Assembly: GCA_977016875.1 (NCBI GenBank)
Contig: CDRNST010000104.1
Span: 3,410,001-3,474,000, forward strand
DNA from: Pavona decussata
Taxonomy: Eukaryota
Direction: 5' to 3'
DNA length: 64,000 nucleotides
Position numbers and translations under genes: made by a program. Position 1 is the stretch's first letter, and each line of letters starts with the position of its first letter. The notes under the pieces were generated by a model that made no database searches, was not told where the DNA came from, and was given only the letters and a program-made list of their open reading frames with translations. This document shows, in pieces, positions 8,331 to 47,205 of this stretch.

Positions 8331-11300
8331 ATGTTTGGCCGGTCGCCGCCAAATATTCTGGCGACTTCAGTAGTTTGTTTCTTACTCTTTCTTCAATTTC
8401 AGTGGTCTCCAACGCAAGCGAAGCCTTACTCAAAACAAGAGTTTTTAAGTACATATACAGCAGGTAACCTTGGAGGTGTCCGTGAAGAAGATTGGCCGGA
8501 ATTTGTAAACTATAATAATGGACAAAATATAGAAAGAAGTAAGAGAAGTCCAACTGAAGTGGAAGATGAAACACTGGACAGTTTGGTAGAGAAAACTTTA
8601 AGTGTAAGAGCTCGAAAGAGACAAGGTATTGAAACGCCGATACAACCTTTGAATTCAGACTCTCCTTTAGATCTTCCACACTTTAGCACTGAAGAACATG
8701 TTCGCTCAAAAGTTAACCAACCTGATAGTGAATCGGTTGGTGTAACGGTGGAAGAAGAAAAGAAAGCAGATGACGACATCTCTAGTACGAAGGATTCGAA
8801 AGGAGGTGATAATAACGTCAAGCCGGCAACGGGAAATGAATCAAACGAACTGCATCAAGACGAAAATGTTTCTTCGAGTAATGAAAATTTGAACAATAAC
8901 AAACAGAGAGGAACAGAAAACAAAGAGAATTTAGCAGCACAGGATAAATCTGATTCCAGCAAAGTCAGTCTAAACACTGATTCAAGTACTGACAACAAAA
9001 ACAGTAAAGATACTGGGGAAAGCAAAGCAGACTTGAGCAGGTCCGTTGATGAAAATGCACAAGTTCGTACGGTCCAAGGTACCAGTCAGATAAATAAAAT
9101 TGGCAATATTCCTAATGACAAGAGCGGTTCAAAATCTACACCACTGGACAACGATCAGTCTAGTTCAGTTACCGCTAGTACCAAAACAAATCAACAGGAA
9201 ATCCAAACTACAAATACAAATAATGCCAACAAACAGCAGGTAGACACCGACGTAAGTAAACCCACCGCAGCGAAACCCGAAACATCGGGTTTAGTTTCGA
9301 GTAATCAAAAACCGGCAGCTCCTTCAGAACAACGTCCACCAACTAACTCCCAGTTATCCGAAGAAAGCAAACCGATAAACACAGTACCTCAAATAAAAAA
9401 TGAACCAGAGGAACCGGTTCGAGATGCATTGGGGAATAGTGGATCAGAAATTGTGACAACTCATTCTCCCCGAGAGCCTGAACCTGAACTTGATTCATAC
9501 TCAGAAAGAAGCGCGGAAGCGAAACCTTCTAATGGACCTGAGGTTGGACATTTTCAAGTAGATGACAAATCTGCCGATCTTGAAATAAACGCTAACTCTG
9601 CCGGGGTAAAAGTTAAAGCTAAACCCGCCTCGTTACAGGTGGTTTCACGCCCTGGTTCTCACGCCGCATCGGGGGCACAAGAGCGATCTTTGTTCGGCCA
9701 TTACCACTACCCGCCTTATCATGTTCATCACCACTGGTATCCTGGCTTGCGTAGGTCATACGGGCATTTCCACCGACGCCATTTCTTCAATCCTTACCCG
9801 CCTTTTCCTGAAAGGCGTAGTTTCGAACGCTTCTACGACGAAGCACCTTTCTACCGTCGCCGCTTGCACTACTGGTACCCTCACAGACATCGACACCATT
9901 TCCCGGATTCCTATTTGTACGAAAGATCCCAACTAGAGGAGCCGGAAGAGCCTTTAAGATATCGTCGGCGAAGACGCCATAAACGGCGTTTTAGGCATAT
10001 GAACGGTCCGTATCGACGCCAGTTTTATAACAACATTCCGATAACGAATGGCATGGAATCAACTCCGATGGGCGTGCCACCGGAAGAAGGAACAATGCCT
10101 CAGTTACCAATTGGCCCACTTCAACCATTTGCACAGCGGCAGAATATTATAACGCCAATGCCACCTCCGATAAACGTTGCTGGAAATCCACCGCCTGGCT
10201 TACTTGGAGGAATGAACGCGGAGAACTTTCCAATGAACGAAATGAGCAATTTTAATGGGATAAATCAAGTAAATGGCGCATTTAATGGGATGGGTAATAT
10301 GGGCACAACGGGATTCAATTCTCCAGAACAAATTGGCGCCATTGAAGGTTTACCAGTTGGAATGAACGGTGGTTTGGAAGGAATGCAAGCAGCTGAACAG
10401 ACACCCGGTATAACCAGAGAACTACCAAACAGGAAAACTTTAGCTGAGGAACCAAGAAAGGCATTCAAGAAGACTGCGATCGTTTCTGGGAAGAAGGACA
10501 ACCACACAACAACTAAAGAACACTCACACGATCAAAATACAGCACTTAAGAACAAACACTCAGAAGAAGGTAAAAAGATGCAGACAACTGGCAGCACAAA
10601 GAAAGCAAAGATAAACCTAAAAAGTTGGGAAAAAACTCTCAAACGTTATCATCGACTCAATAAGTTTACGTCAAAATCACACGAAAAACATCAATTTCGT
10701 AGGAGTACCAAATCTTCTTCTTTAGACTCGGAAACAAAGAACACTGAAGGAAAAGTTCTACAAAAACACCGCATCTCGCATCTTCACTCACAGCGTGCAA
10801 AAGACACAAAAGGGAAGCGAAAGAACGAGATTATAATGCACCGTCCACCAATCATATATCACCCTCCGCCTGAAATCTATCACCGCCCTGACATTGTGGT
10901 TCACCGTGCACCGATTATGCTGCATCGGCCGCCTATAATTTACCATCAGCCTCCCGTTGTTGTTCACCGACCAGCAATCATCTACCATCAACCACCCATA
11001 GTCTTCCATCAACCTCCTCCAATGGTCCATCAGCCAATCCTGCGCTCTCACGACACATGGGTGACAAAGCCTGTGGTGTATCACACAGCATCCACAGTTT
11101 CTCACGATAAGACATACTTTGGAGTACCGTCTCACGTGTACACTGGCTCTTATGGTGAAGGATGCCACGGAGGACATTGTTCTTACAGAAAAGGAAGTGT
11201 GCCACATAGAAATAATTCCCAAGCTACCCTTCATAAGATAAAAACAAAACGCGACAGTTTGAGTGACTATATGGCTTATTTTACGTCCTTGTGGAAGGCT

Positions 11301-14300
11301 AATGGCATGACCAAAAGAAACGTTCATGATGACTACGATTTTATCACGTCAAGGGATGGTGCAAAACAAAAATTAATTTACACAAGTGTGAATTCTGGTG
11401 GGATAAGTAAAAGAGACAGCGCTACAGATTACAACAGATACATTCACAGCATATGGAACCATAAAGTCAAACGAGAAGCTGGTGATTTAAAAAACGGAAC
11501 AGAGAAGAAAAAGAAGAAAGACGTCGTTGTCAACCGCCCTCCTATAATTTATCATCCTCCACCTGAAATTTACCACAGGCCAGACATAGTGGTACATCGC
11601 CCTCCTCTTGTGATTCACAGGCCACCCATTATATACCATCAACCACCAGTAATAGTTCATCGACCAGCCGTGGTGTATCATCAACCACCGATTGTATTCC
11701 ACCAACCTCCCCCTGCAGTTAGCCAGCCTTTGCTGTATTCTCACGACTCTTTCACTGTTCATCCTACGTTCTTTGCTACACATCATGGTTCTGTTGTGCG
11801 AGACTTCGGGCACTATGTAGGGGTTCCAAATGTCATCACTAATTACGGAAACCCACTTTTTGGGAGAGGACCGCCCATTGGCAAGAGATCAAAGATAGAA
11901 ACGCCAAATTCAGTTAACGAAACTCTATCGAAAAGCTCAAATTCAACGGGGACTACGTCCAAGAAAGCCACAATTCAAGACAACAAGAAAAAAGAAAAGA
12001 ATGACACTAGTGAAAAAGCAAAGAAAAAGAACACTGTTTTGGTTCATAGGCCTCCAATAATTTATCACCCACCCCCTGAAATTTATCATCGGCCTGTGAT
12101 TGTGGTACATAGACCACCCATCATGATTCATCGGGCACCAATATATTATCATCAGCCGCCGGTGGTTGTTCATCGTCCTGCTATAGTGTATCACCAGCCG
12201 CCGCTGATATTTCATCAACCACCTCCAATGGTGCATCAGCCAATACTAAGGTCCCACGATACGTGGATATCTCACCATGTGGTGGTTCCTTACTCCTCAA
12301 GTGTTATGCATCACCACACCTACGTTGGCGTGCCTGACGCATTTACCGTTCATCACTTCGCAGGAGGACACAGCTTTTATAAGTCAGACATTTTAAGGCA
12401 TAACGACCGAGATAATGAACGTGCATCTGAAAGAAATGAAATAACTGGTAAGAAAACGTCGACGGAAAAACAGAAAGATTTACCCAAGAAGCACAAAATT
12501 ACTTCACATGATAAAACCAAACACACTTTGAATCTCAAAATTAAGAAGGCGGCTGCTCAAAAGGGCGGAAAGAAAAACGCAGTCATAGTGCGACGTCCTC
12601 CAGTTATTTACCACCCACCACCAGAAATCTACCACAGGCCAGAAATAGTAGTTCATCGCGCTCCTATTGTAATTCATCGAGCTCCAATAATTTACCATCA
12701 ACCTCCTGTGATTGTACATCGACCTGCTATTGTGTATCACCAGCCGGCGCTCATATTTCATCAGCCGCCACCTATTGTACACCAACCGTTTTACAGATCA
12801 CATGACACCTATGTCCATATGCCAGTTGCGAGACTATACTCATCTCGGATAAACCATTTAGGACACACGTACCACATTCCACACGCCTACTACCACGGTC
12901 ATGGTGGTGTTATTCACCATATGGCTTATGACAAATCTAAAGTACCTCAAAAGCAGCATATTAAAGACGAAAAAGGGGAGACAAGGACCACTGTTAAAAA
13001 GAGAAAGAAGTCAAAAACAGAGAAAACTAGCCATCATGCAGAAAGAAAGCATGCCACCTTAACAAAAAGCAAAGACAAAACAGAAACAGGAACAAAACTT
13101 CACAAGAATCATAAAATTCTTTACCATAAGGCAAAGGAGACTACAGAAAAAGCAAACAAAAAAAACTCTGTAGTTATACACCGACCACCAATCATTTACC
13201 ATCCACCCCCAGAGATTTATCATCGCCCAGACATCGTAGTGCACCGCGCTCCTATAGTTCTCTACCGTGCTCCGATTGTGTACCATCAGCCTCCAGTGGT
13301 GGTTCATCGTCCAGCCATTGTTTATCACCAGCCACCTATCGTTTTCCATCAGCCACCGCCTATGGTCCACCAGCCAGTTCTCCACTCACAAGATACTTGG
13401 GTGACCAAACCGGTAGCCATCCCATACGCATCTCATGTACATCACATAGCCACCTACAGGGGTGTTCCCCACGAAGAGATCTTTATGCATGGGATTGGCA
13501 CAGGAGCGTTCGGAAAATCCAGAGTTCCTGTTAGAGGGACCCGCAGAAACAAGATAGATAGTGTTGGCGATGAGAGAAAGAACCAAACAGACAACAAAGA
13601 AACAAAGGAAGCGAAAAATTTGAACGAGTCGAATGATAAAGGGAAGAATCGTACAACGAGAGCTGCATACAGTGAAAAGCAAGGTAAAGATACAATAGGA
13701 GCAGCAGAGAGAATAATACGAGCATTAACGGATTCACTTACAGATAAACGATTGGAATTTATGGTGAAGAAGAATCCCATTGGAGTTGGTGCAAGAATCC
13801 AAAGAAGCCTTCAAAATATATTCCCTGTGTATGGAGACTCTTTATCACTAACTGCCTCAAACCCTCATAATTCAATCAAGATTCCAGGACAATCTGTCGG
13901 TGCGGTAACGAGAATTCAACGATCCAACGGTGCCTTTTGGAGTCCGGTGGGTGCTGGTGCTAGGATACGGAGGGCCGTAGCAGAGCCATGGAACACTCTT
14001 GAAGGTGAGAATCCATATGAAATGAATAAACGTAGTAGTGAGGAAAGTGAAAACCCCTCTACACCTGACGAAAATGCAGACAAAAACACTAATAGCACCA
14101 AAAAGACAATACTTATAATTCGCAGGCCACCGATACTTTATCATCCACCAAGCCACATGATCCATCGACCATCCATAGTTGTTCACAGGCCGGACATTAT
14201 AGTCCACCGTCACCCCATCGTCTTTCACAGACCACCAATACTAGTTCATCGTCCCCCAATCATAATCCATCGCCAACCAGTACTTATTCACAGGCCGCCA

Positions 14301-17300
14301 GTAATAGTTCATCGACCGCCATTGGTGTTTCACCGGCCACCTATAATTATTCACCGTCGTCCTTATATTATTCATCATCATCCTATTCTGTTCCATCGAC
14401 CACCAATTATTATACACAGGGGACCGCAAATGATAGTGCATCACTCCCACCTAATTCATCATTATCCTATGCACATGATACACATGCACTGTCCTGGTTG
14501 TGGTTTTGGAAAATCCACCGTTGCACGATTGCAAGGTAAAAGAACTGATCAAGACGGTAAGAAAACATCAAATTCAGACAGACAACATAAAGACGCTACT
14601 GTCAAGGACTCCCAACGGAAAGATTCTAACCTGCCAAAACGCTCTGTTGCAGACAAGAAGTTAAAGAAAAGTTCCCGAGAAGAGGACCATAACAAAAAGA
14701 AGAAAGACGGACACAAAAAGAAGAAAGACGTAGTAGTCAATAGACCCCCGATTATTTACCATCCGCCACCAGAGGTATACCACAGACCAGACATTGTTGT
14801 TCATAGGGCTCCCATTCTTATTCACAGGCCACCTATTGTATACCATCAACCTCCTGTTGTAGTTCACAGACCAGCGGTTGTTTATCACCAACCACCCATT
14901 GTGTTCCACCAACCTGCACCGGCAGTGAATCAACCTCTGCTATTCTCACACGATAGTTTTGTTGTACATCCTATGGCTTTTGCATCCCACATGGGATCTG
15001 TTGTAAACGACGCTGGTCATTATGTTGGTTTACCGCACGGTGGAGTAACTAATTACCCAGGTTCTATATCCCATGGACCAACAGGACACATCATTCCTTA
15101 TTTAAATCCACCCAACTGGTCAAGAAGAGCTCAAGTTTCTAAACCGCTGGACGAAAAGCATACAAAAATCAACCATGGGAAGAATAACAAAGACCGGAAA
15201 CGTTCCTCTGGGACGACTGATGGCACTCACAGAAGAAGCGCAGGAAACAGTAGGAAACTTGTAATACAGGAAAGCAAGGAGACCAAAGGTGAGAGAAAGA
15301 ATAAAGTTATCGTTGCACGACCACCTCTGATTTATCACCCACCACCTGAAATTTATGATCGCCCAGACATTATTGTACACAGACCAGACATTGTGATCCA
15401 TCAACCCTCAGTTGTGTACCACCAGCCATCTGTAGTAGTCCACAGGGCACCGGTGGTTTATCATCAGCCTCCTGTTGTATTTCACCAACCAGCTCCAATG
15501 GTTAGCCAACCAGTGTACCACGCCCATGACACGTACATGGCACACCCCGTATATCATCCGCAAGAGAGCCACATTTCGCACTCTGCAACATATGTAGGAG
15601 CACCTCATTACTACCCAGGATACAACAGTTACGGATGGGGCTTACAAGGGAATATACCCACTGCACATATACAGCCAACTCCACAGATCCCTCAATATGG
15701 TTATACAACTGGTCCTACTCATCCTGGTTTCAGTGGATACACACCATATTCAGCCTCCCTTGGAAATGCCTTCGGAAGATCAAAGGTAGAAAATAAAAAG
15801 AAAGATAAATTTAAAGACAAAGAGACAAAATTGAAAAATGCTACCAAAAAGGGTCGTACGAGCAGGTCCGTGGAGTTAAGCAAACGTCACGTGCATCACC
15901 ATCATCATCACCACCATCGTCACCATCATCATGGCATTCATTATCGCGGAAGGAAACGCTTTTATCCTCTCCATCCAATGGCATCCTTTGCCCATCCAGG
16001 ACATCGCAAACATGTCGTCATTATACACCAACCTCCTTTGATATATCATCCACCGCCGCAAGTTTATACTCGGCCAGACATACTCATGCGTTTGCCTCCG
16101 CTTGTTTACCACAGGCCAGCGATAATGTTTCAACAGCCACCGACAGTAGTCCATCACCCCCAAATAGTTTATCACCAACCTCCCGTAGTCTTTCACAACC
16201 CTCCTTCAATAGTACACACACCAGTTATTCACACGCGCGAGATGTTGTCACCTCACCTTCAGCATGTAATGATTCCAACATCATCGTACATGCACTCTGT
16301 TGGAAACTTTTTTGAGCCTGGTGTCTCAGGTACGGCATACGGAAAGGCTCACATAGAGCGAACCGACGCAAGCAAAGACTCTTTGAAGAGCGAAGCTGAT
16401 ATGGAGACGAAAAGCAAGAACAAGAATGAAAAATCACACGAAAAGCGAGACGTTTCTAACGAACCTGAAAAAGAAATGAAAGATACGAAAATATCAAAGA
16501 AACAGAACGTTGATCTTGTAGTCCACCAGCCACCAGTGATGTATCATCCGCCACCGGATATCATTGACAAGCCAGCTGTTGTAATGCACCAACTTCCGAT
16601 AGTCGTGCACCGTCCGCCCATACTCATACACAGACCTCCTGTTGTGGTCCACAGCCCCCCAGTGATAATACACAGAGCTCCAATTGTACTTCATGACACA
16701 GCACCCGTGTATCATGTACCACATGGCAATTTCTTTCATCCAATGCGCTATGCTTTTGGAAAATCCACAGTAGAAGGCGAGAATCAGCAGCGAAACAAGG
16801 ACAAGCACAGCAAGGAGAAACATGATGAAAAGACCAGCCAGACGAAAGGCGCCAAACATTCAAATACTGAAAAAGCAAAAAGGAAAAACACCGTTCTTGT
16901 TAATAGGCCTGCGATGATATACCACCCTCCACCGGAAATCTATCATCGACCAAACATTATAGTACACCGCCCAGACATAGTCATACACCGACCATCAATT
17001 GTGTATCACCAGCCTTCCGTCCTTATTCACAAACCTCCCATAATCTATCGTCAGGCACCAGTTGTTTTCCACCAGCCTCCACCAATGGTGCATGAACCAA
17101 TTTTGCATGCACACGACTCGTACCTTGCATACCCTGTTGCACTGCCATACACATCACACATTCATCATGCAGCAACATACGTTGGGGCTCCACACTTTTT
17201 TGATCAGCCACATTTTGGTGGATTTGGTGGATATGTGGGGCATGCTTTTGGAAAATCGGAAGTTGAGGAGACCAAGAAAACACACCGCAGTGATGAAAAG

Positions 17301-20300
17301 GAAAGTAAGAACAAAAAACATACCAACACTGAGGTTAGAAAAAATTTAAGGTCAACGCGTGATGTGGACTCTGAAAAAACAACTAAAGAAAATAAAAAGT
17401 CAACCTCCACGGTCAGTTCTAAAGGGCACAAAAAGAACAAAGTTGTTATAAACAGACCGCCATTAATTTACCACCCGCCACCAGAGATATATGACAGACC
17501 AGATGTAATTGTTCATCGGCCGGATATCGTCATTCATCGTCCTTCTATTGTTTATCACCAATCATCAGTAGTTGTCCACAGACCGCCAATCGTATATCAA
17601 GCACCTTCTGTGGTCTTCCATCAACCGCCACCATTGGTGAATCAGCCCATAATGCACGCTCATGAAACTTACGTTGCTCATCCAGTACCAGTGCCCTACA
17701 CATCCCATATCCAGCACACATCAACCTATGTTGGTAGCCCACACCACTATCCTGGTGGATGGCACTATGGTTGGAGCCAACCTCAGCCGTATGGATTTAC
17801 CTGGAGTCAGCATCAGCCATTTGGTTTGGCATTCGGAAAGTCAAATGTGCCCGCAGCAAAGCTAAAGTCTTCAGGGAACCATAAGCCCGCAAATAAACAT
17901 AAAGTAAAACGAGCGGAGAAAGATCAAGCCAAAAAAAATGACAAAAACATAAGCCCAAAGTCTGAAGGGACCGGTAAGAAGAAAAACCAAGTACTTATAC
18001 AACGACCACCTTTGATATACCACCCACCGCCAGACGTGTACCACAAACCTGATATAATTGTGCACAGACCTGACATTGTTATCCACCGGCCTTCCGTGGT
18101 TTATCACCAGCCATCTGTTGTGGTTCACAGACCACCGGTGGTTTATCATCAGCCGCCAGTTGTTTTTCATCAGCCATCTCCAATGGTTAGTCAGCCAGTT
18201 CTACATGCACATGACACTTATGTCGCCCATCCATATTTTACGCCCTACTCATCCGATGTATATCACTGTGGAAGCTACGTTGGTGCTCCGCACTGTTATA
18301 ATGGCGGATGGGGGGAACACGGATATGGCTTTGCCCATGCCTTTGGAAAATCAAAAATACAAGTGGCTAACAAGAAACAAAAGCACCAAAAATACAAAAG
18401 CAAAGATCTAAAGGGCCACCGCAGAACCCTTGAGAAGGAAATCAAGGAGGCGGTGGATGAGATTAAATTAAAGAAGGAGGCCAAAAAGGGGATAAGGGCG
18501 AAAAAGAAGAACCTCGTCATAATGCGTCGGCCTCCTCTAGTCTATCACCCACCACCGGAGATTTATCACAAACCGGATGTCATTGTGCATAGACCCGATA
18601 TTGTCATCCACAGGCCTTCTGTAGTTTTCCACCAGCCTTCGGTTGTAGTTCATAGACCACCAGTAATTTATCAACAACCTCCAGTCATATTCCATCAGCC
18701 AGCACCCATGGTTCACCAGCCTATCCTTCATTCACATGACACGTATTTCGCGCACCCCCACTTTGTCCCGTTTGCGTCGCACTTACATCACGCAGGCAGC
18801 TACGTGGGTGCCCCACATTTTTATCCAGGAGGATGGGGCTTAGGAGGGCACACTGATGACTTTCACCACGCGTTTGGAAAATCAAAAGTCGAAAAATCGT
18901 CAAAACAGCATGTGAAGAGTGACCACGAGAATAAGGACGGAAATGATGACGATGGGGAGAAACGTTCTCCACCAGAGGCAACAGACTCTTCTGAGGAAAA
19001 TAAGCATAAAGGCAAAATTAAGGAAGCCACAAAAGGACACAAGAAAAACTTAGTAATCATGCGTCGGCCACCACTTATTTACCACCCGCCTCCAGAAATA
19101 TATCACAAACCAGATATAATTCTACACAGACCGGATATCGTTATTCACAGACCGTCAGTTGTTTTCCATCAACCATCCGTGGTGGTTCATAGACCACCAG
19201 TAATTTACCATCAGCCGCCAGTTGTTTTTCATCAGCCATCATCAATGGTACACCAGCCTATCTTCCATTCACACGAGACGTATGTTGCTCACCCTCATTT
19301 TGTGCCATATTTGTCCCACTTAACGCACGCTGGGTCTTATATAGGGGCACCACACTTTTTCCCAGGACACTGGGGACCAACACATGGGTTCGGACATTTA
19401 GCGGCACATGCATTTGGAAAATCCAAAGTAGAAAAAGCTGCAAAAAAAGTAAATACAAAAGCTGTGACTCCAAGAGCAAAGTCAGAGGAAGCTGTGCATT
19501 TTAAAACCAAACGAGAGGCAAAACATGAAAACTTGCATCGTGACTTGTCTGGTGTGAATCAAAAGGCAAAGCTAAAACAACAGTATTGGAAAGCCACGGG
19601 AGAAAAAGCAGAAAGAAAGGCTGTCCATTTACATCCCGAAAAGGAGACTAAGAAGGGTCACCATAAAGCACACAGAAAAAACTTAGTCCTGATACAACGT
19701 CCAGCTTTGATTTATCATCCGCCACCAGAAATCTATGACAGACCAGCTATCATTGTTCACCGACCCGATGTCGTCATTCATCAACCTTCCGTGGTTTACC
19801 ACCAATCTTCGGTGGTTGTCCATCGTCCACCAATTATATATCGCCCACCACCAGTAGTATTCCATCAACCAGCACCAATGGTACATCAGCCTATGTACAC
19901 TTCCCACGACATATATCATAGTCATCCGCACTTTGTCCCATATGCCTCTCATATCAAGCACACACAAACCTACGTAGGAGCACCGCATTACTACCCTGGA
20001 GGATGGAGGTATGGCTACGGCTTTTCTGAAGCCTCTATACCTCAACACGCTGGATTAAATGGGTGGAATGCATTTAACAGTCCATGGTATCAACCATCAC
20101 TTTACAGAGCGAATTACCTTACACCAACTGGTGTAGCATCGCCCAGCGGTATCCGCAGAAGATACCAGTCAGCATTTGCCAAGTCTGATGTTCAAAAGCA
20201 CGATGCGAAAACCGAAGACTTGAAGGACAATCACAAGAAAAAAGACGAAGGTAGCCAAAAATCGCATCATGTTCAAGAAAAAACAGGAAAACGAAATCGC

Positions 20301-23300
20301 CGCTCAACCGAGTCAACTAAGAGACGCCAAGGAAAGGGGCGCAAAACGGACGAAGGAGGCAAGAAGAACGTAGTAATGATAAGACGGCCTCCACTTGTGT
20401 ACCACCCACCTCCAGAGATCTATCACAAGCCAGACGTAATTGTGCATAGACCTGATGTAGTTATTCACCAGCCTTCTGTGGTATACCATCAACCTTCAGT
20501 TGTGGTTCACCGTCCACCAGTTATTTACAACCAGCCTCCGGTGGTATTTCATCAGCCAGCTCCCATGGTAAACCAACCAATTTTTCATGCGCATGAAAAC
20601 TACATGGCCCACCCTTACTTTGTTCCTTACGCAAGTCAGATCCATCATACTGGTACTTACGTTGGAGCTCCTGAATTCTTTCATGAAGTAAGGGCCTTTG
20701 GAAAGTCAGACGTTTCAAACAACAAATCAAAGTCTAAGAAGCCACACGAAAAGTCTGAAAAGAAAAACAAAATGGTGAAAATAGATAAACGAAAGAGCGC
20801 CAAGGGAATGGTTTTCCATCCACAAGAAGAAAGAGAAGAAAAACCATCAAGAAAGAATGACATAGTTGTTAGCCGTCCTCCTATTATCTACCACCCACCA
20901 CCAGAAATTTACCATCGGCCGGATATTGTAGTTCACAGAGCTCCTATAGTGCTTCACCGCCCACCGATAATCTATCACCAGCCACCAGTAGTTGTGCATA
21001 GACCTGCTGTCGTGTACCATCAACCCCCAGTAGTCTTCCATCAACCACCTCCCACAGTTCATCAACCCATTCTTCATTCTCACGATTCATTTGTTGTCCG
21101 CCCAGCCGCCAAATTCTTTCCACAAGGCTCTACGTTAACACATACCATGAATTATGTGGGAATTCCTAACCATGTAATACATGGTGATGAACTAGCGTTT
21201 CACCACTTTCATCGATCACAAATAGAACATTCTGGTAGAGATACATCGTATAAGAAGCCATCAACTGTCCAAGTGGCGAAATCGACCATCTCTAAAATAC
21301 CTACAACTAACAAAGAGAATACTCAAACAACCATAACAGACCAAACGCAAAAGAAGACTTTGCGATCTATCATACGTCACCACAAATTAACTAAAAGACA
21401 GCTCATTGGTTCACATTCACTTTTTGGATCCTTTTCTCCTATAAACAACATTCAAGATTCTGAAAAATCGGTTGAGCAGAACGAAAAGCTGTCAACTATA
21501 CCCGGAGATACATCAATTCGTGAAAATAGCATTGCCAAGAGGCAACTTATTGCACCAGAATCTATCGAGAGTGTCTTCCCTAACTTTATGCGCAACTCTT
21601 TACCCTCAGTTTACAATACACTGGAGATGGCAGCTTTGCAAAACCAAGCTTTAGCAGCCTCTGAGGACTCACCAGTATCAGACAAGGTTGACCAGGTACA
21701 TTTGCCTGGTTTTACACCCACTTTACCAACACTTCATGGTATAGGAAGGTCTGGAATTGAACGGTACCCTTTTCTTTTAAAACATTACCTGCCAGGAGCT
21801 CCAAAAGATGACTCGCCGGACGTACGCGTTCACATAGAAACAGCAAAGTCCTCTATACCGATTAAAGCACGTGGAAAGCGGCAGATTATCCCTATATTTC
21901 AGCAGCAAGAACCACCACAAGCATATCCAGCACTCTATCAGTCGCCAGGTCTTGAGAATTTGGAAGGGGCTATCCGCGAAGCTACACCTTCCTCCGTTTA
22001 CCGCCTCTTCAGTCCATACAATGCGATGAGTCATCCAGGTGCAGATCCATATCACTATCTACGAATCCCTTCCGCGTCATTGCATCATCCTCGCGTCAAT
22101 ATCAACGTGCAGTCAGCAAGATCTACGATACCTCACATTGGCCATGCTATTCAAAAGCGATCAAACAACAAAAAGTCAAAAAGACAGTTTTTGGCGGTCA
22201 TGCCACCTCTCTCTTCCCGTTTACCCGTTGGCTTAGGGGGTGGGATAATGCCCCTCCCTTTCTCACCTTACTCGGCCCTGTCCCGTTTCCCATATCCACT
22301 TTTACCCCGTCTAGACTATCCTCAAGAACCGGAAACCGAAGAAACCGCATTCACAGAAGCTTTACCAGTTCTTCCTCGTCCATCATCAATTCCTCATACT
22401 CCATACAGCGGATTTTCAGAAGACCAAGACAATGACTCACCGTCATTCAATCCAGTGGCTTCATACTTAGCTGCACTTTATAATGGCTACTTTGGGTACC
22501 CATTTTATCGTCCCCATAAAAAACCTAAAGTCCACGTGGAGGTACACGCATCAAAATCACAGATACCCAAAGTCACAGAGAACAGGAAATACGGTCATTC
22601 TCGTATTTCTAAACGGCAACTGTATAATTTCTTACCACGTTCACCAGTAATCGCAAATCACTATACCTTGCCTGCAGCTTTAAATTACGGAATACAAGGG
22701 TTTCACCAGAATTCTCCGCATGTAAGCATTAACGTAGAAACAGCAAAGCGTCAAGGAATTCCTTCATTGTTAAAGGAAAAGAGGTCCCCAGTGGCAAAGA
22801 AGTTAAAGCAACACGAACAAAGAAGAACTGGAGATAAAAGAGACCAGCTTTTACAAAACGGAGAAAATGGTCAGGAATCTTTTCCATACCAAGAAAACTC
22901 GAATTCTGTTGCAACACAGGATAATCAGTTTGTTATTTCAAGAGAAAGCAGTCAACCACAAGAGGAGATCGCTACAAACAACAACGAGATCGCTCAACCA
23001 CTAGCGCAACAGCAGCTTCTGCAAGAAGCGGCTGGGCAACAGCAAGAGCAGCAAGAAGCAGAACAGCAACAAGAAGAGCAGCAACAAAGACAGCTTGAAC
23101 AACAAGAGCAGCAACAGACCATAGTACAACAACCAGAACCTTTTCCCAACCAACTGACAATGGAACCGTTCCAAGCTCAGCAGCTAGCTTTTCGGGCACC
23201 ACTGACTCCAATGCAAGTACCAATGCAGCCACCAGGGCAACCAGCTTTTAATGCACCTTTTGTGGCACCATTTATGGCTCCTGTCCAAGGTGTGTTCCCT

Positions 23301-26300
23301 GGCGTATTACCTGGAGTTTCAGGCAATCATGTTGCCGAACAGGCTATTGCACAACCAGGATCGAATGCTGGAGAAGGTCAACCGAAGCATACCTCAATTA
23401 ATGTTAACGTGGCCGCCAAATCTATCGTTCCAAAGAAAACTTCAAAGAAAAATAAAAAATCCCACAATCCGAAATTTACAGCTTCACAACGAAGAAATAT
23501 TCCTAAAAAGTCTGCGATGGAAAAAGGGTTTGAAAAGCGCGAGAGGATTTCTCTTTTAACGCGCTTTCCTGCAATGCAAGTATTGCCCCAAACGTTTAAG
23601 CAGGACGGCGTATTGATGCCTGCTTTCAATACTTTACCGGTTAATCACAGAATCAAGGGTAATGGGATGCTCTTGGAAGAATTACAAAGGCAGAGAAAGC
23701 ACCAAATTCCAAAAACAGCTAAACATAATGACAGAGGCAGTCAAACAGACAAGGAAAACAGTGAACAAGTCAAACCAAAGGAAAACGCAAAAAAACGCCA
23801 GTTCTACGGCATCTCGCAATCAATGCTAACATCTCAACCATATGTATTAGCACCACAACCTAAAATCCATCTAAGACCCAAAGTTTCAGTCAACGTGGAA
23901 GTCAGTAAGAGAAAGTCTGCGTTTCCAAACGGAAAATTTCATTTAGAACTTAAAGATGTAGAAAGTGGGTTTAATCGCAACGAAATGAAACCAGAACGGC
24001 GAGTGTCTGGAATAGAACAGAAGATTCAAATGCCAAATGTGGATACGCCTCGAGTGCGTCAGATTCCCTCGAAAGTGCAGCGACACAGAGTGACAGTTCA
24101 TGGAGAAAGAGCAACAAAGAAGGGAGTGAGACAGCAAGTACTCAAACGAGGACAAAACAGCGACAAAAAACGGCAAATATACGGCTTTTCGGAGTTACCA
24201 AATCAGGGTTTAATGCAGCCATTGTCGTTAGGCAGCCAAAATGAACCGCTTGGATATTTACCTAGAGCACTACACAGTCCACGTATTTCTATCAATGTTG
24301 AGGCGTCAAAGCGATCACCGGACCCTTCACATGATGTCCAAAAACGCCAACTGCTTGGTCTACAACCCGATGCCAAGGAAACCCTAGATCAAGCTCAAGA
24401 ACCCGTTCCATCTGGGCAACCAACATATCAGTCGGATGACCTAGTTGCGGAAGATGCTGCACAGTTACCTATCCAAGTACAAGATCAATCCCGGGAAAAT
24501 GAAGTATCGCCTATGGCTATTGAATCAAATCCCACAATGACACAACAACAGCAAGTCCAAGACCTATCACCAGATAGCTTAGAACCTCAGGATGCTTTAA
24601 CTGATATCTTTAATAAGCGTCCACGAGTTTCTGTTCATGTGGAGGCTTCGAAAAGAGGGAAAAACGAAAGGAAACTACGAAGTGCTTTAAATAGAAAACA
24701 ACGCAGCGTTAAAGAAAAAACGGGCGGCAAAAGACAATTTCAACAAATGGAACAAGGGGCGAGAGATTATGGGCCTTATATGCAAGGACAAAGACCTGTC
24801 ATGGATACTCAGCAGTTAGTGGTCGAACAACAGCAACAGCAAATTTCTCAGCCACTGGATTTTATTTCCCCTGTTGGTCAACAACAGAATGTTGAACAAT
24901 TTCAGCCAGTAATGTTTCCAGTTGCGCAGCCAGGGGAGGCAAAAGCGAGACCAAAAGTGAGCATAAATGTTGAAACCGCAAAGTCTTCCATATATGGACA
25001 CAGTGACCATTCAAAGGAATATGGATCGGAAAAGAAAACGAAGCGACAACTGTTTGGCACCGTACCCCTTCTTAGTTCCCTTGGACAAACAACAGCACCT
25101 GGTGATTCACGAAAGATAATTAACCCAAGGTCATCTGTACCCCTCTTAACGGAGAAACCTGCAGACAAAAAAGATCTGCGATTGCGGAGAAGACAGCTTT
25201 ATAATTATCTAGGAGGCCAACAGGAACAGATTCTTCCTACCCAGGCGATACAAGATACCACTGAGTTTGAACAACAACAGCAAGAACAACAACAGGACAT
25301 ACCAATACAGGCATCTCAACAGGATGTTCCTGTAAACCTGCAGCAAGCCTCTGTATTGGAATCAAGTAATCAGTATCAAGGCCAAATAGAGGAACCAGAA
25401 AACAGTCAGACAGCTCCTGCCATACCCACTCAACCTGAATCATCATTTAACCCTCTTGGTACAATTCACCGTCCTCGTGTGAGTATAAACGTTCAAACAG
25501 CTAAATCAAAAGTGCCAAGCATGATGAAAGCCAAAATACCAAAATCAGAAAACAAAGGATCTAGTTCCCAGGACCACGAAAAGAAGAAATTCAAAAGACA
25601 GTTTGATATCCTTGGTGGCGGTGGTGAAATTGAAAGACGGCGGCGCCCAAAGTTTTTGACAGCACCACCATTAAAGAAAGGGCGGGGTGAAAACCTATTC
25701 GGTTTGGGCACTAATGTGAACAAGCCCGTTGAAGTCTTTGCAAATCCAATCGCGAACCTTGTTGCTGGACGAAAAAGACCAAAGTTTGGGGGAATTCAGA
25801 TCGATAGTCCCACAGATGTTGGAGCTTTACGGCTTAAAGGAGGTGCCAACCCTTTAGGAGGTGCCCTCGCTTCTGATGTGGGTGCACCACCTATAATTCA
25901 AGACAGTGCCGCAGCGGGAATTGCCCCATTTGTTCAGGAACCTGCAGCGACTGGCAGTAATCCTTTTTTACCTCCGAGTGGTATCGCAGGGCCTCAAATT
26001 GATGCTCTTGAAAAAGGAGACACTGGTACCTTACCAATAGCTGGACCTCCTTTGAACAGACCAGCAATTATTCCGTTACCTGCTCTCAATCAGGCTCTCT
26101 TCCAAAACTTGCCTTTGGCAACTGCTACAGGACCACCTACGGAACGTCCTCTACTACTTTCTCCACGAGTGCTTCCGCTAGCCCCAATCCTACCAATGGC
26201 AGTACCACCTCCACCACCACTGGCAGTACCACCAGAAGCAGTACCACAACCGCTACAGACTCTAGATGAGGCAGGACCAGAGCTGCAACATGATCCTCAG

Positions 26301-27128: not shown

Positions 27129-27259
27129 NNNNNNNNNNNNNNNNNNNNNNNNNNNNNNNNNNNNNNNNNNNNNNNNNNNNNNNNNNNNNNNNNNNNNNNN
27201 NNNNNNNNNNNNNNNNNNNNNNNNNNNNNNNNNNNNNNNNNNNNNNNNNNNNNNNNNNN
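27129..27259. other. Assembly gap (N run)
   Basis: Run of N. Confidence 1.
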
Positions 27260-32756: not shown

Positions 32757-32766
32757 CATGTATAAA

Positions 32767-39159: not shown

Positions 39160-41130
39160 ATGGTGGCCTTTCGGGGATTGTGGCTGTGTCTTTTAGGGAT
39201 TGTGTTGTTTAGTTTTTCCGCTGGCGTTCATTCAAAGGGAACAAAAACCAAACGAAGCCCAAGAAAAAATACCGTTCGTTATACCGTTCATGAAAAACCG
39301 CCAGAGCTGGTTGTGAATGCAGATCCCGAGGGAGTGAAAGTTCAAGCCAAACCTTCAAAGCTTCAAGTTATAGCTTACCCTCATTTGCAAGGTTTTAGCC
39401 CTTACGAACACACAGCAGTACTAGGTCCACACAGCCCGCCCGTGAATATTGGCCCAAACGCACCTCCAGTTCACATTGGACCTCACGTGCCAGCTCTTCA
39501 TCTTAGCCCTCGAGTTCCAAGCCTTCATTACGGCACTAACGCGCCTCTTCTACACGTAAGGCCTCATCTTCCATTTGTTCACATGACTCCTCCCGTACAC
39601 GCCGTAAACGCGCTCACTGGTCCTCCAGTGCACGTGTTGTCGCCATCGACAGTGTATCATCAAACGCCGATTGTTTTCCATCAGCCACACTTTAATTATC
39701 CCTCGCACTTTAATTATCCCACCCCAGCGTTTGGTGGATATGGTCCAATGGGAGGTTATGGCCCAGGATTCGGTGGTTTTGGCGGAGCTCCTGGTTTTTT
39801 CGGACGTTCTACGATACCTGAAAATGATGAAGAAGACGAGGAGGACAGTGATAAAGACCCTGAAAGTGATTCGCATAAGAAAAAAGGCAAATCAAAACGC
39901 GAGGTTGTGTCACAAAAAGTTAAACGTCAGTGGTTTGGTTGGCATCCATTTCCCCACACTGTGAACGTAGGACCACACACCCCACCCATCCACGTTGGGC
40001 CACATTATCCCCCTGTCCACATTGGCCCTCACGTTCCAGCAGTCCATATCGGGCCTCATGTCCCAGTGATTAACGTTCCATCCCATGTCCCCGCAATCCA
40101 TGTGCGCCCTCATGTTCCTGCTGTGCATCTTGGACCTCCCGTTCCTATCATAAATGCAGGAAACCACTTCCCAGCTGTGCACGTTACGTCACCACCTACC
40201 ATCTACCACCGTCCTCCTATCGTCATCCACCAACCTCATATTGTTCATCCTTATGGAGGATGGAAGAAGAGATCAAAAATTGCCAAAGCTGTGGACTCAA
40301 AAGAAGAGAGTCCGGAGAAGACTGAAGAAGATGAGGCCGAGCAGAGCAGCGGAGAAGAAGAGACAAAAGAGCAAGCCAAGGATATTGAAGACAAACCTAC
40401 AGAGCAAGCAGAGCAGACTCCCGAAGAATCGAGTGGAGAATCACAGGAGGATAGCAGAGAAACACCCCAAGTAGAGGAAGAGAAGAAAGAAAGCACAAGA
40501 TCTGTCGAAGAAGCTGACGTTCGACCAAAGCGTCAGATGTTTTCCAATGCTAATTCTGGACCAAATGGTGATTCAGTAATATTCGTTCACCCGAGCGAGC
40601 ATGGTGCAGGAAATCCCGCGGGACTAGGTGAGTTGGCTGGTGGTCATGGTAATCCGTTGGAAGGCGGCAATCCAGCTGAACCTTTTGGTGACCTGTCTTC
40701 GAAGGCATTCGGAGAAGGATTCAATCCCAGCTCCTTCCCAGAAGGAGGACCTGGAGGAGAAATGGGTACCGGTGGAGATAGCCTTGCTGGACTCGCAGGA
40801 GCAAGTCTCGGGGGAGCGGCAGGTCTTGGAAGTAATGAAGGTCCACCCATGGGAGCTAACAGCTTTTCTGAGGCTGGAGGATTAGGTGGCCTTGGCGGAC
40901 AGGCTGCCCCTGGAGGCGAACTTGGAGGACTTGGAGGATTGGGTGGTGCAATGGCCTCGCCAATGGCAGCAGGTCTTGGTGGAGAGGAAGCTAGATCTAC
41001 TGTCCCACGTTCGTTTATTCCTAGAAAGCTTAGAGAGATAAGCAGAGGCTACCTTACAAGAAACCCTCTTGACGATGGGCGTAATGCAGCCATAGTCAAG
41101 AAAACGCAGATTCCACGACCAGGACAGTAG
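39160..41130 (+). CDS. Secreted His/Pro/Val- and Gly-rich modular polyprotein precursor (cluster gene 3, ~656 aa)
   Basis: ATG at 39160 (the ORF track starts at an upstream TTG). Signal peptide MVAFRGLWLCLLGIVLFSFSAGVHS; three modules separated by acidic spacers and KR sites, ending in RSTIP, RSKIA and RSTVP; AATAAA at 41203. Confidence 0.92.
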   Translation: MVAFRGLWLCLLGIVLFSFSAGVHSKGTKTKRSPRKNTVRYTVHEKPPELVVNADPEGVKVQAKPSKLQVIAYPHLQGFSPYEHTAVLGPHSPPVNIGPNAPPVHIGPHVPALHLSPRVPSLHYGTNAPLLHVRPHLPFVHMTPPVHAVNALTGPPVHVLSPSTVYHQTPIVFHQPHFNYPSHFNYPTPAFGGYGPMGGYGPGFGGFGGAPGFFGRSTIPENDEEDEEDSDKDPESDSHKKKGKSKREVVSQKVKRQWFGWHPFPHTVNVGPHTPPIHVGPHYPPVHIGPHVPAVHIGPHVPVINVPSHVPAIHVRPHVPAVHLGPPVPIINAGNHFPAVHVTSPPTIYHRPPIVIHQPHIVHPYGGWKKRSKIAKAVDSKEESPEKTEEDEAEQSSGEEETKEQAKDIEDKPTEQAEQTPEESSGESQEDSRETPQVEEEKKESTRSVEEADVRPKRQMFSNANSGPNGDSVIFVHPSEHGAGNPAGLGELAGGHGNPLEGGNPAEPFGDLSSKAFGEGFNPSSFPEGGPGGEMGTGGDSLAGLAGASLGGAAGLGSNEGPPMGANSFSEAGGLGGLGGQAAPGGELGGLGGLGGAMASPMAAGLGGEEARSTVPRSFIPRKLREISRGYLTRNPLDDGRNAAIVKKTQIPRPGQ

Positions 41131-43305: not shown

Positions 43306-43367
43306 CGACGGTGCCTCCTTTTGTTACTGCGCGTCTCGAGATACTCGGGTTTCATATGGGTGGTTCC

Positions 43368-43405
<38 letters not shown>

Positions 43406-43663
43406 GCGGAAAATGCAGAACTTAGCAAGTGCTCTTGGTGTCCAAAAAGAAAATTGGGGGTAATCATGCATTTTTCAGAGATAAACGCCATACATTGCTT
43501 TGTATTTTACTGCTTTTTAGAATAATCGTTGCTTAATTATCTCTATAAAAAAATGCCCCGCTACCCCCAATTTTCTTTCTGGATTCCAGTAGCCCGTACA
43601 TAGATCTGTCTTTCCCGCATAGTCATAGACTGACAAATACTGCTGTATTAGGTGGCACAGCCC
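43306..43663. mobile_element. Palindromic MITE with TTAA target site (Kolobok- or piggyBac-type)
   Basis: ttaa at 43302-43305 and 43664-43667; termini cgacggtgcc / ggcacagccc; internal inverted arms aagaaaattggggg / cccccaattttctt and actatgcgga / cccgcatagt. Confidence 0.7.
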
Positions 43664-44405
43664 TTAACCAATCACGTTTTGTCATTTTTTTCCACAGGAG
43701 CGATATTCTAATAACGCCAAGCAGTGGCCGTCATATTTATAGATGCTCTACGATCAAAGGAATGATTTTTAAAGCGATTCCAAAAGACTGAATGGATTTT
43801 TATTCAAGACCCTGCGGAGATGCACAACCCCGTTTTGTGCATGAATAAAATAAAAAGCTCACGTTGTATCGTACATGTATGAGGCCAAGACGTCCCCAAA
43901 GCCAGTTCATGGTCAAAGATGGATACCTTCGAAATGATACTTTCCCTTTAAAACAAACAAAAAAAAGTTGTCTATTTTGTTTTAAGCGAATATTGTGAAA
44001 ATAAAACTAACGATTTGTGAAGAGAACTGTGTCGAGTTCATTTACTCCCTTATCGCGGTTTGTTTAGGGGAAATAATTACCATAAAAATAGTAAGGTTTG
44101 CGCATGAGGTATGCTTTTACAACGTTGTTTTCAACTATGTCAAGCTAAACTGGGAACCGAATCCATCCAAATTTGAAGATATTCCAATAATCATGCTGCG
44201 TTTGTACAGTGAGAAGTTTTTTTAAGTTTTAAAAAGAAAGTTTCAACACCCCTCTATGGTTTTGTTATATATTGTAGGATAATGTTGTGAGATTAGCTCT
44301 CGGTCAATTTCCCGATGTCCTAAAGGGGTTTAGTCCATCATCCAGATTCTGCTGATTTTTCAACCTGCCGTGAGCGAGTTCGTTTGGGGTATAAGTGTAG
44401 ACTAA

Positions 44406-44649
44406 AGCCCCATTCACACCAACAAAACATGTTTAATTAAACCAAGTTTAACAAAATTAAAATTGATAACAGAAAGCTGGACCATTAGCTTCGACATAGG
44501 ATTCAAGTAAACTTTAACTGATGGTTTTATTTGAGCTAAATACGGTAGTCGACAAAAATCCGAAAGAAGCTTTTTTGAAGGAAACAATTTTAAACTGTGT
44601 TAAACTAAACAGCTTTTAAACGTGTTTAAGCCTGGGTGTGAATGGGGCA
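44406..44649. mobile_element. PIF/Harbinger-type MITE (244 bp)
   Basis: TIRs gccccattcacacc / ggtgtgaatggggc; TAA at 44403-44405 and 44650-44652; TIR related to the 27555 element. Confidence 0.8.
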
Positions 44650-45040
44650 TAAGGTCCCTTTTCCTGCCATAAGAATAGTAAAGAAACCGAACAATCCGTG
44701 AATACAACCGTCCAAAATTAATCAGTTTTACCGTCTTCAGTTGAGTGAGACAGGTTTTCGAAACGTTTTCTGTTCACTTCGCAGTTAGTTGCCCTATCAA
44801 TCTAACTTGTTTTAAAAATCATTCCTAGAAGTAGTGTACATCCACACTTCCAGCCCGGATGACAAACGCCGGTCGTGTAACGGGAGGGTCAGTGAAAAAC
44901 AATGGAAACTGGTTAATATTTAAATGAAAGCTAATGAGCCACCTTTTTTGTTGGTTAAGCTGTACACAGTAATTAAAATCTAACCTCTGAGGAAGCGGAT
45001 GGAATTGGAAAGTGTAAGGATTAAAATGATCGGGGTTTTT

Positions 45041-45266
45041 NNNNNNNNNNNNNNNNNNNNNNNNNNNNNNNNNNNNNNNNNNNNNNNNNNNNNNNNNNNN
45101 NNNNNNNNNNNNNNNNNNNNNNNNNNNNNNNNNNNNNNNNNNNNNNNNNNNNNNNNNNNNNNNNNNNNNNNNNNNNNNNNNNNNNNNNNNNNNNNNNNNN
45201 NNNNNNNNNNNNNNNNNNNNNNNNNNNNNNNNNNNNNNNNNNNNNNNNNNNNNNNNNNNNNNNNNN
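45041..45266. other. Assembly gap (N run)
   Basis: Run of N. Confidence 1.
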
Positions 45267-46139
45267 TGAAATTCTCAAGTGGCGCTCTTTATAAGTATAA
45301 CCTGAGGTGTCGAACAGAACTTTCTGTTTGTGCTATTTACTGTTATGTACCGCCCATGTTAGAACTTTTTAATGCATGTATGACTCCTTAAGTAGAACCA
45401 TTCAATAGCCAGACTTCCTTAAACAAAAACAAACTGTAAGTATTGCAATACTGGCCAAGTAGAAATGTAACCTCTTTCTTTTAGTTCAAATTGTAGATAA
45501 TGTGATAGATTAACCAGCATGGTTGATAGCATGAAAAAAACGAGGTGCCAGCCGGTTGGTTGCCTCTCACAAAGCCAAGTGAAAAGGAAACATTTTCAAT
45601 AGTGATTTATTAACATTGCCTGCAGCTTCAAACTAATGTAATAAAAACTACTTCAACTCCATAATTTCCCATTTAAGCAAGGTTCACAGAAAACGGAGTA
45701 AACACTCAAAAGCCGATGGTACTTTTATGATTTAACACTGGGTGTGATAATTTTCTATTTCGATTCTCGATAGTGTTTCCTATAACTGAACGTAAGGTTT
45801 ACTGTTTTCCTATGAATGTCGGCTTGTCTTAACTTCTCCATACATACCTTTTTCATGGGCCCGTACTTTTCGGTCAACCCTTTGAGAGGGCTCATAACCG
45901 CCCCTAACCTTAGTAATATGGCATTTTTAAAAATGATGATAGAAATCAATCGCAAAGAATTAGGCCACTTGCTGGCAAAGTTATTTATTATTTACCATAA
46001 ACATGATATCACCAGAAATTATCCAATGAAAATAACAAAAACGGTAGCGATTTTACTTTGCTTCTATCGCAGTAGATATGGAAATTTTTCGTCTTTAAAT
46101 CGAAAAAGTGGACCTGAATTTTTTTCCACAAGCACAAGC

Positions 46140-47205
46140 ATGACATGGTTTAATTTGGGCGATGGAGTTCGGGTGATAATATGTCTTGTTTGTTTGTGCC
46201 ATTGTTTTGGAAGTGTTAATCCAAGAGCATTACCCCAAGATGGTGGCACAGTGACTCAGACTGGTGAACCGTCACATTTTCAAGTTGATGACAAGGCCGC
46301 TGAGATTGAAGTAAACGCCAATCCTGCTGGGGTGAAAGTTAACGCTAAACCAGCGTCTCTTCAAGTTGTAGCAAAGCCTGGTACACCAGCCGTTCCCATA
46401 TTCCATCCATCAATTCATTTGGCTCAGCACTATGCGCCACCACCGGTCATCCATCACGAACCAGCCATGTTTTATCACGGTTGCTTTCATTTTCCCTATT
46501 GTCACAACTGGTTCTACAATGGAATCAAACGAGAAAAGTTTCCAAGACCACAAAACGTTGAAATTAATATCAGGACACACAAATCGGACATCCCGCGAGG
46601 AAATAAGCACAAAATGGGGATTAAGTCCCGAAAACGTCAATTTATATCCGCTGCTCCACAACTTGTACTACCAACATCGGTTGGTGCTTTGGGAGGGCTA
46701 AGCGCTTATGGCGGCTATGGATATGGGGCGTTACCTCAGTATGCTCCATTAAGTTCGGTTTCAAGAGCTTATGGCTTTCGACAAAGTCCTCAAGCGCGAT
46801 TATTTGCATCACCAGCGCAGCTACTCCCTCAGCAAGGTCTCCAAGAGACTGGTCTTACAAGAGGCCTTGTTCCTACAGTGGCAAACGACCAAGACAATCC
46901 TGAAGTTTGGCGAGGTTATTCAAAGCTTTACAGTGAGCTGAATACCCTTACTTCTATGTACAACGCCTTCTTAAGACAAAGAAGCCTGAATTCTCTACAG
47001 GGTTTGGGTTATGGTAGTGGCTTAGGTCTTGGTGGTGCGACAAGTTTCAATGCGGGAAGGAGTGGTTTAAGTTATGTACCCGCAACCCTAGGAACTTCTC
47101 AGTATAGCGATGCAATGATGGGTTACGGAAAAGCTTACATCCCTTCCCCATTGTCCCAGCTTTATGGGTCACAGAGCTCTCTTGGTCAGTCCAACGGACT
47201 CCTTG
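46140..47205 (+). CDS. Secreted modular polyprotein precursor (cluster gene 4), exon 1
   Basis: ATG at 46140 gives the signal-like MTWFNLGDGVRVIICLVCLCHCFG. Contains HFQVDDKAAEIEVNANPAGVKVNAKPASLQVV (near-identical to gene 2) and an RKR-Q module. Phase-1 donor CTTG|GTATGT at 47206. Confidence 0.85.

Follow-up and report, generated by a model that had tools for sequence, protein, structure and literature searches.

A conserved mini-domain, predicted to be all-beta, near the start of secreted precursors in Pavona decussata and other cnidarians

Profilaggrin, a cytoplasmic protein of the vertebrate epidermis, carries one conserved folded head, a helical and Ca-binding S100 EF-hand, before a giant polyprotein rich in His, which is subsequently cleaved into repeat units. 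The N-terminal domain of spidroins is a five-helix bundle of approximately 130 residues that dimerizes as the pH falls and is thought to control storage and assembly. In amelogenin, the conserved N-terminal TRAP segment of approximately 45 residues has a beta tendency and drives the self-assembly of a matrix protein that is Pro/His/Gln-rich and mostly disordered, and the bacterial curli protein CsgB is a beta-solenoid composed of five repeats of approximately 22 residues with Gln/Asn ladders. Spinalin/nb054 of Hydra is a cnidarian-only, secreted protein that has a Gly/His-rich part and then basic and acidic parts; it is a component of the nematocyst spines, and its long splice forms are derived from a complex locus (PMC2687796, PMC9205923). 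This study analyzed a stretch of 64,000 nucleotides of Pavona decussata DNA (NCBI GenBank assembly GCA_977016875.1, contig CDRNST010000104.1, positions 3,410,001 to 3,474,000 of the forward strand), hereafter called the window, the genes of which are numbered 1 to 4. Genes 2, 3, and 4 are headed by the same mini-domain of 36-40 residues, and this mini-domain is the subject of the present analysis. All positions given for these genes are those of the window.

The mini-domain of genes 2, 3, and 4

An initial annotation of the window had reported three related peptides, one at the head of each of the three genes. Our translations reproduced the three peptides exactly, and only the last coordinate, 46383, was one base too long (46382). 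All three copies are encoded on the plus strand. The gene 2 copy spans 9537-9656, with its core at 9549-9656; position 9537 is where a 40-residue block that is invariant among the gene 2 orthologues begins. The gene 3 copy (39277-39381), the most divergent of the three, is located after a signal peptide and a KR/RK site and is kept in the orthologues P0001-P0005, and the gene 4 copy (46275-46382) does not vary across 10 orthologue clusters. A hidden Markov model (HMM) of the family, which comprised 62 sequences and was run with the filters off, was used to search the window in all six frames. The results revealed these three copies only, with expectation values (E) of 2e-24 for gene 2, 1e-20 for gene 3, and 3e-26 for gene 4, and the next match had an E of 5. 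The proposal of one copy per gene was thus borne out, and even the 6058-residue open reading frame (ORF) of gene 2 holds a single domain.

We then considered the genome as a whole. When the gene 2 copy was used as a query against the six frames of the 602-Mb genome, which comprises 1180 contigs, gene 4 was recovered at an E of 2.4e-12 and gene 3 at an E of 0.006; a profile of four sequences recovered four loci at E values of 4e-26 to 1e-23 and a fifth locus at 8e-4. In the family profile of approximately 40 positions, F7, A20, and P40 are near-invariant and V9, K12, and V27 are conserved, and the window copies match this profile. The mini-domain is the only sequence similarity that could be detected in common among genes 2, 3, and 4, and it remains, as first suggested, the clearest evidence of their paralogy. 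These comparisons indicate that the motif is homologous among the three genes and that it is a true protein domain.

When the gene 2 orthologues of five species were aligned, the 40-residue block was invariant but for one Arg/Lys change, and the sequence flanking it contained many substitutions and indels. Between gene 2 and its Nematostella orthologue, 40 of the 40 residues of the block were identical, compared with 83/375 (22%) upstream and 40/145 (28%) downstream. A codon comparison of the gene 2 copy with the orthologues of three other species revealed 21-26 synonymous differences in 36 codons and 0-1 nonsynonymous differences. This pattern indicates that unusually strong purifying selection acts on the protein, at polar and hydrophobic positions alike. 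The gene 2 and gene 4 copies differ from each other by 14 synonymous and 8 nonsynonymous codons of 36, and they are therefore old paralogues and not the product of recent gene conversion. The heads of the gene 2 and gene 4 types are 78% identical, although the two proteins are otherwise unrelated. Conservation in gene 4 extends beyond the domain as a single unit, which takes in the 47 residues that follow and ends at a conserved Lys-Arg.

Because the genes are adjacent and rich in low-complexity sequence, the likeness might be attributed to chance or composition, or to a recent gene-conversion patch between neighbors, in which case the motif would not be a domain. This explanation was ruled out by E values of 1e-20 to 1e-26 against noise that begins at an E of 5, by the copies on another contig and in other cnidarian classes, and by the near-saturated synonymous sites between orthologues and the 14 of 36 codons that differ synonymously between genes 2 and 4. 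We consider this explanation already refuted and its remaining probability negligible.

AlphaFold2, run on the gene 2 copy with the 62-sequence family alignment, predicted strands at residues 6-12, 15-21, 24-30, and 33-39. The predicted strands are seven residues long, antiparallel, and joined by two-residue turns; the predicted local distance difference test score (pLDDT) was 96-97 in mid-domain, approximately 90-97 across the domain, and approximately 50-60 outside it. When AlphaFold2 was applied a second time, to the 142 residues of the first gene 4 module, it yielded the same four strands and low confidence for the rest, and in this model neither the His/aromatic stretch nor the HKSDIP motif was packed on the sheet. 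The domain is therefore predicted to fold as a four-stranded antiparallel beta-meander; the initial annotation had proposed four short beta-strands at a spacing of approximately nine residues, and both models returned this arrangement with high confidence. One face of the predicted sheet is hydrophobic (F7, V9, L16, I18, A20, V25, V27, A29, L34, and V36; gene 2 numbering, alignment A3); on the opposite face, strands 1-2 bear Asp, Glu, and Asn, and strand 3 forms a Lys-x-Lys-x-Lys ladder. This amphipathic alternation can also be read from the sequence itself.

The mini-domain had not been recognized as a named domain in the initial annotation, and database searches led to the same result. No Pfam-A family was found at E<=0.1 for the N-terminal 800 residues of gene 2, for gene 3, or for gene 4, and 0 of the 62 domain segments reached the cutoff of any Pfam-A family. 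A sequence-profile search of the PDB returned one match, to an S-layer protein at an E of 0.58, which is noise, and Foldseek found nothing in the PDB at E<=1e-3. The best score in a wide VIA-align search was a Z of 2.1 (a lysenin pore hairpin and an HU arm), representing generic hairpins. In the ESM Atlas, a search by shape returned unrelated bacterial proteins at TM<=0.5, and a search by features with a C150 paralogue (described below) as the query returned no usable match.

Two candidates were rejected. DUF4097 'toastrack' (PF13349) was matched by 7 of the 62 members at a best E of 0.017, under the cutoff; that family is defined by several consecutive beta-helix rungs, and the mini-domain has just four strands. 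Bacterial Ig-like/cadherin-like repeats yielded partial matches of 14-28 positions, in many repeated stretches and without the F, A, and P columns of the family, whereas a sandwich domain of the Ig-like or cadherin-like kind comprises approximately 90-100 residues and would be expected to be matched at full length. Weak matches of this bacterial type were P0060, P0063, P0073, P0075, P0076, P0079, and P0081. The mini-domain is a domain family that is annotated in no database searched. Neither of the outcomes that the initial annotation had considered fatal to its interpretation was observed: the orthologues conserve the domain almost perfectly, and no Pfam match was obtained.

Distribution of the family and position of the domain

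When 1.84 billion representative proteins were searched exhaustively with the profile, 78 clusters were identified at E<=1e-3, 54 of those at E<=1e-10, and approximately 67 clusters were judged true members. The remaining clusters were bacterial repeat proteins or low-complexity sequence, in which 14-28 profile positions were matched. Named members originate from Nematostella, Actinostola, Acropora, Aurelia, and Sanderia, and the closest named relatives of the window proteins are those of the sea anemones Actinostola and Nematostella. The family comprises at least six subfamilies, namely the gene 2, gene 3, and gene 4 types, two C150 types, and one or more medusozoan-like types. The gene 2 type includes giants of 5019-5811 residues, one of which is Nematostella LOC116618347; the named proteins of the C150 types are Nematostella LOC116612445 and LOC116612446 and an Acropora protein with a Cys-Gly tail; and the medusozoan-like types include Sanderia malayensis and Aurelia.

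These sequence comparisons indicate that the domain is common to Anthozoa and Scyphozoa and, as far as the search shows, is restricted to Cnidaria. What had been taken for a local feature of three paralogues is thus an old family. No hydrozoan member was found among the 30 clusters that were named, and a second search with a medusozoan alignment added three more C150a-like members and no hydrozoan. Identical proteins were observed on high-coverage contigs in 'metagenome' assemblies of the ENA (three loci, L010-L012); the contigs most likely come from the same animal as host, and the three loci served solely to show where this genome occurs.

The genome outside the window contains two more copies, in a head-to-head gene pair on contig C150. 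The two family genes (C150:641945-645262, loci L003 and L009) are located approximately 2.4 kb apart, and the same arrangement is present at the Nematostella locus L013, where a 125-residue gene on the minus strand (LOC116612446) faces a 265-residue gene on the plus strand (LOC116612445), indicating that the microsynteny is conserved. In the minus-strand gene of the pair, an intron splits the domain after the first strand. Proteins of the C150a type (L003:1399-2262, plus strand; P0066, P0070, P0074, and P0181) have a degenerate second four-strand pattern near the C terminus, of the form x-V-H-G-x-x-G-x-L ... N-V-F-I-x-N, and the profile detects this second stretch in two members.

We further analyzed where the domain is located within its proteins. 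The hydrophobic leaders of genes 2, 3, and 4 were judged by eye. A Met start was present in 66 of the 67 family representatives, and 38 of these 66 showed a long N-terminal hydrophobic run in a test of the first 50 residues, which is crude and misses several evident signal peptides. The domain starts within approximately 75 residues of the N terminus in most members; in the gene 2 type and in a related group of proteins of approximately 640-800 residues, it follows a polar D/E/S/K-rich region of approximately 150-480 residues. Nearly all family members therefore appear, from their sequences, to be secreted proteins with the domain near the start.

The segment downstream of the domain is disordered and usually His-rich. 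In most gene 2, gene 3, gene 4, and medusozoan-like members, the next 100 residues contain 8-36% His, and a few members have less. The initial annotation had stated that the domain always heads the first His-rich stretch; this was true in the window and in most members, but not in the C150 types. No dibasic site is present at the end of the domain, and in most members the first one follows 13-60 or more residues further on. In the scyphozoan proteins, the head is followed by a His-rich part, a poly-Asp part, an aromatic-Lys-Lys-x-x-Ile-Pro motif, and a basic tail. This order is the same as in the anemone modules, indicating that the module grammar is old too. Tails rich in Gly, His, and Tyr follow the mini-domain in P0019, P0118, and P0005.

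Gene layout and neighboring sequence

Gene 2 (8331-26507, plus strand) is one uninterrupted ORF with no N inside. It begins with a signal peptide, an acidic/Ser/Asn-rich region of approximately 375 residues, the mini-domain, and a His/Tyr/Arg-rich stretch, and continues with His-Pro heptad modules; in its C-terminal zone, the modules start with Gln after KR. Its orthologues of 5019-5811 residues (P0044, which is Nematostella LOC116618347, P0031, and P0043) carry the domain at the same relative place. Gene 3 (39160-41130, plus strand) is a single exon encoding 656 residues with a signal peptide, and P0002 aligns with it from end to end. Gene 4, also on the plus strand, was delimited by tblastn with the orthologue P0013: residues 1-356 correspond to exon 1 at 46140-47207 (3' boundary approximate) and residues 356-710 to exon 2 at 48677-49774 (5' boundary approximate). 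Exon 1 encodes, in order, the signal peptide, the mini-domain, a conserved His/aromatic stretch of 47 residues, KR, the HKSDIP motif, and KRQ, and the signal peptides of gene 4 and P0013 share a Met-Thr-Trp start.

The window contains two intergenic assembly gaps. One (27129-27259) is located 620 bp past the gene 2 stop at 26507, and the other (45041-45266) is located between genes 3 and 4, 874 bp before the gene 4 start codon at 46140. Stop codons crowd all six frames on either side of both gaps. Because of these stops, the N-free ORF of gene 2, and the match of the gene 4 start to that of its orthologue, the gaps have no bearing on the finding.

Gene 1 (1664-3430, minus strand) encodes a secreted polyprotein of the Gly/Tyr/Trp and Gly/Cys kind. 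Its modules end in the same grammar as those of the other genes, and it has no head domain; the head is thus not required by every gene of the cluster. Nearly every low-complexity module of genes 1-4 (10815-26507, plus strand; 1664-3430, minus strand; 39160-41130, plus strand) ends in an aromatic residue or Gly followed by [KR]-[ST]-x-[IV]-[PE] and then by a basic linker, as in FGKSKV, FGRSTIP, YKSKIA, and HKSDIP. The scyphozoan members P0058, P0078, and P0120 have Y/F-K-K-x-x-I-P at the same place. This module end is an old motif with a putative role in processing or recognition, and its variants with Gly before the basic residue are similar to a cnidarian amidation site.

Residues 4498-6040 of gene 2 (21820-26420, plus strand) contain eleven tags with the consensus P-[RK]-V-S-[IV]-N-V-E-[TA]-[AS]-K-S, each of which precedes a basic stretch and, in many cases, KRQ. 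The idea that the head consists of four tag-like strands in a row was rejected: the family HMM, with the filters off, found no second domain in the gene 2 ORF. An hhalign comparison of the tag profile with the family gave a P of 0.14 and a probability of 0.3%, leaving the link between head and tag unsupported. Of this tag, the gene 4 orthologues conserve the HKSxIP part alone.

Three conserved islands stand in otherwise divergent sequence among the gene 2 orthologues, all on the plus strand: GIETPIQPL directly after a KR site (8625-8651), a GNSGSEIVTT block shortly before the head (9417-9461), and QRQNIITP..PPINV.GNPPPG approximately 160 residues past the head (10134-10199). Two further neighbors were noted, an intron-less gene at 53138-54598 (plus strand) encoding a 486-residue protein that combines leucine-rich repeats with an EF-hand at its C terminus, and an ORF at 62604-63569 (minus strand) with a weak ZU5 match. 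P0001 (Actinostola sp. cb2023, QZH41_003850) is a 962-residue model that joins the gene 3 and gene 4 orthologues and has two heads. It is probably an annotation fusion, and the joined model shows that in Actinostola, as here, the two orthologues are same-strand neighbors. In another anemone assembly (L014:501-6160), the gene 2 orthologue was called as two genes of 1719 residues and at least 2980 residues, 90 bp apart; a gene-calling error or a frame break has probably divided a single giant gene.

Proposed role and comparison with known systems

The reading that we prefer, to which we give slightly less than an even chance, is that the domain acts as a handle by which His-rich structural precursors associate with themselves or with each other. 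If such a four-stranded sheet stood by itself, its hydrophobic face would be exposed, which could not persist in water; the simplest ways to cover this face would be pairing with a second copy, stacking into a longer array, or binding a partner. Paired or stacked sheets would unite the gene 2, gene 3, and gene 4 precursors, and a secreted material could then form as the low-complexity, His-rich regions condense, with the heads as seeds or organizers. In other His-rich materials, condensation is governed by pH and metal ions. We propose self-association, co-assembly of the paralogues, and a structural product; the candidates for this product are the cnidocyst and other secreted matrices. An association handle is favored by the single copy per precursor, the direct fusion to an aggregation-prone His-rich stretch, the 78% identity of the heads, and the conservation of both faces. 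The conservation of both faces, together with such similar gene 2 and gene 4 heads on unrelated bodies, suggests a shared partner or mutual compatibility. Nucleation, oligomerization, and granule sorting, the roles suggested in the initial annotation, are candidates that would all fit the predicted amphipathic single-sheet model and the layout of one copy per precursor.

Several points weigh against an association handle. AlphaFold2 can draw a neat meander from any alternating pattern, and disorder in half of the folded sequence kept the predicted template modeling score (pTM) low, at 0.38. A nucleator acting on each module would predict one domain per module; the layout of one per precursor fits sorting equally well. 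The C150 types contain only 2-7% His downstream of the domain, so that the link to His-rich sequence is not universal. The identifiers of the Nematostella, Acropora, and Aurelia genes were found in no paper in the literature search, and the literature on histidine-rich, cnidocyte, pedal-disc adhesive, and spirocyst proteins returned spinalin and unrelated proteins only. A homodimer prediction with two copies of residues 1-46 scored 0.01; with the alignment unused and the fold of the partner uncertain, it speaks neither for nor against binding.

The domain might instead be a sorting signal by which a receptor or a condensing matrix directs the whole precursor to one vesicle type, such as the growing cnidocyst or a gland-cell granule, before cutting, and it would then have no role in the final material. 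This would account for one copy per precursor whatever the number of modules, for a position near the N terminus after the signal peptide, for unrelated 'cargo' (His-Pro, Gly-His, Cys-Gly, and Lys/Ser-rich) behind the same head, and for a charged face that is also extremely conserved, as expected for one conserved partner. However, the lack of a dibasic site after the domain means that it stays joined to the first His-rich stretch, with which it is conserved as one unit over 47 residues in gene 4. Known cnidocyst proparts are short, acidic, and removed at Lys-Arg. Moreover, the gene 2 domain is 375 residues from the signal peptide. We regard sorting as the main rival to an association handle, although a doubtful one.

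Docking to a nonprotein partner (chitin, chondroitin, poly-gamma-glutamate, or a mineral or metal phase) through the strand 3 Lys ladder and the acidic strands 1-2 appears improbable. The charged face does present K26, K28, and K30 beside D10, D15, and E17, all conserved, and single-layer sheets serve surface binding in other systems; however, the domain has one conserved aromatic residue, F7, where sugar-binding modules usually use several, it matches no known binding fold, and its hydrophobic face would still need a partner. We consider it quite improbable that the domain is a solubility keeper or intramolecular chaperone that folds back on the His/aromatic stretch until a change in pH or metal releases it. 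Its constant direct fusion to an aggregation-prone stretch would suit such a role, for which spidroin N-terminal domains are comparable, but the AlphaFold2 model of the first gene 4 module, in which the alignment is shallow downstream, did not pack that stretch on the sheet, and the C150 subfamilies have no such stretch.

The cnidocyst is the obvious structure common to Anthozoa and Scyphozoa, and the likeness in composition to Hydra spinalin is suggestive. The head could accordingly be pictured as a shared assembly head of cnidarian-only structural proteins, a beta-sandwich or cross-beta seed that joins His-rich, Gly/His-rich, and Cys/Gly-rich precursors within a single secretory organelle, for which the developing cnidocyst (spines, shaft, or thread) is the most plausible choice. 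It would be a non-collagen counterpart of the minicollagen Cys-rich domain, with Hydra spinalin as a distant member. We consider this extended picture unlikely as a whole.

Cnidarians make materials that are found nowhere else, and beyond the minicollagens few of their building blocks have recognizable domains. The mini-domain provides a precise, searchable signature that ties together dozens of otherwise unalignable low-complexity secreted proteins of sea anemones, corals, and jellyfish, including a giant of 5000-6000 residues in Nematostella, a laboratory model. Because it is small, confidently predicted, and near-frozen in sequence, the domain is an easy target for structure determination, for assays of pH- and metal-dependent assembly, and for knock-down work in Nematostella. 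If it is an assembly head, it would interest designers of His-rich, metal-hardened protein materials.

Compared with the systems described at the outset, the mini-domain shares its layout with profilaggrin, in which there is one head per precursor, not per repeat, before a His-rich body; unlike the profilaggrin head, it is 36-40 residues long, predicted to be all-beta, and secreted, with no similarity in sequence or fold. Like the spidroin N-terminal domain, it is a small terminal domain far better conserved than the body, but it is predicted to be all-beta with approximately 36 residues, and the resemblance is one of proposed behavior only. In composition, the His-Pro-Gln repeats of gene 2 resemble the amelogenin core. 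Amelogenin is small and belongs to vertebrate enamel, and neither sequence similarity nor a Pfam amelogenin match was found. The mini-domain belongs to none of these three groups. With the curli nucleator CsgB and functional-amyloid seeds, the mini-domain shares short strand-turn-strand repeats, alternating residues, and a surface that could template a polymerizing partner; it differs from CsgB in having four strands in a flat predicted meander and no detectable similarity.

Among cnidarian proteins, the Gly/His/Tyr tails of P0019, P0118, and P0005 are like spinalin in composition and grammar only. The propart of cnidarian toxins and minicollagens is reportedly a short acidic or polar segment that stands straight after the signal peptide, ends in Lys-Arg, and is removed. 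The mini-domain was excluded as such a propart on account of its 36-40 residues, its amphipathic character, its lack of a dibasic end, and the distance of the gene 2 copy from the signal peptide. Because the role itself is a proposal, we describe the mini-domain as a new domain family in a known kind of role and not as a new kind of system.

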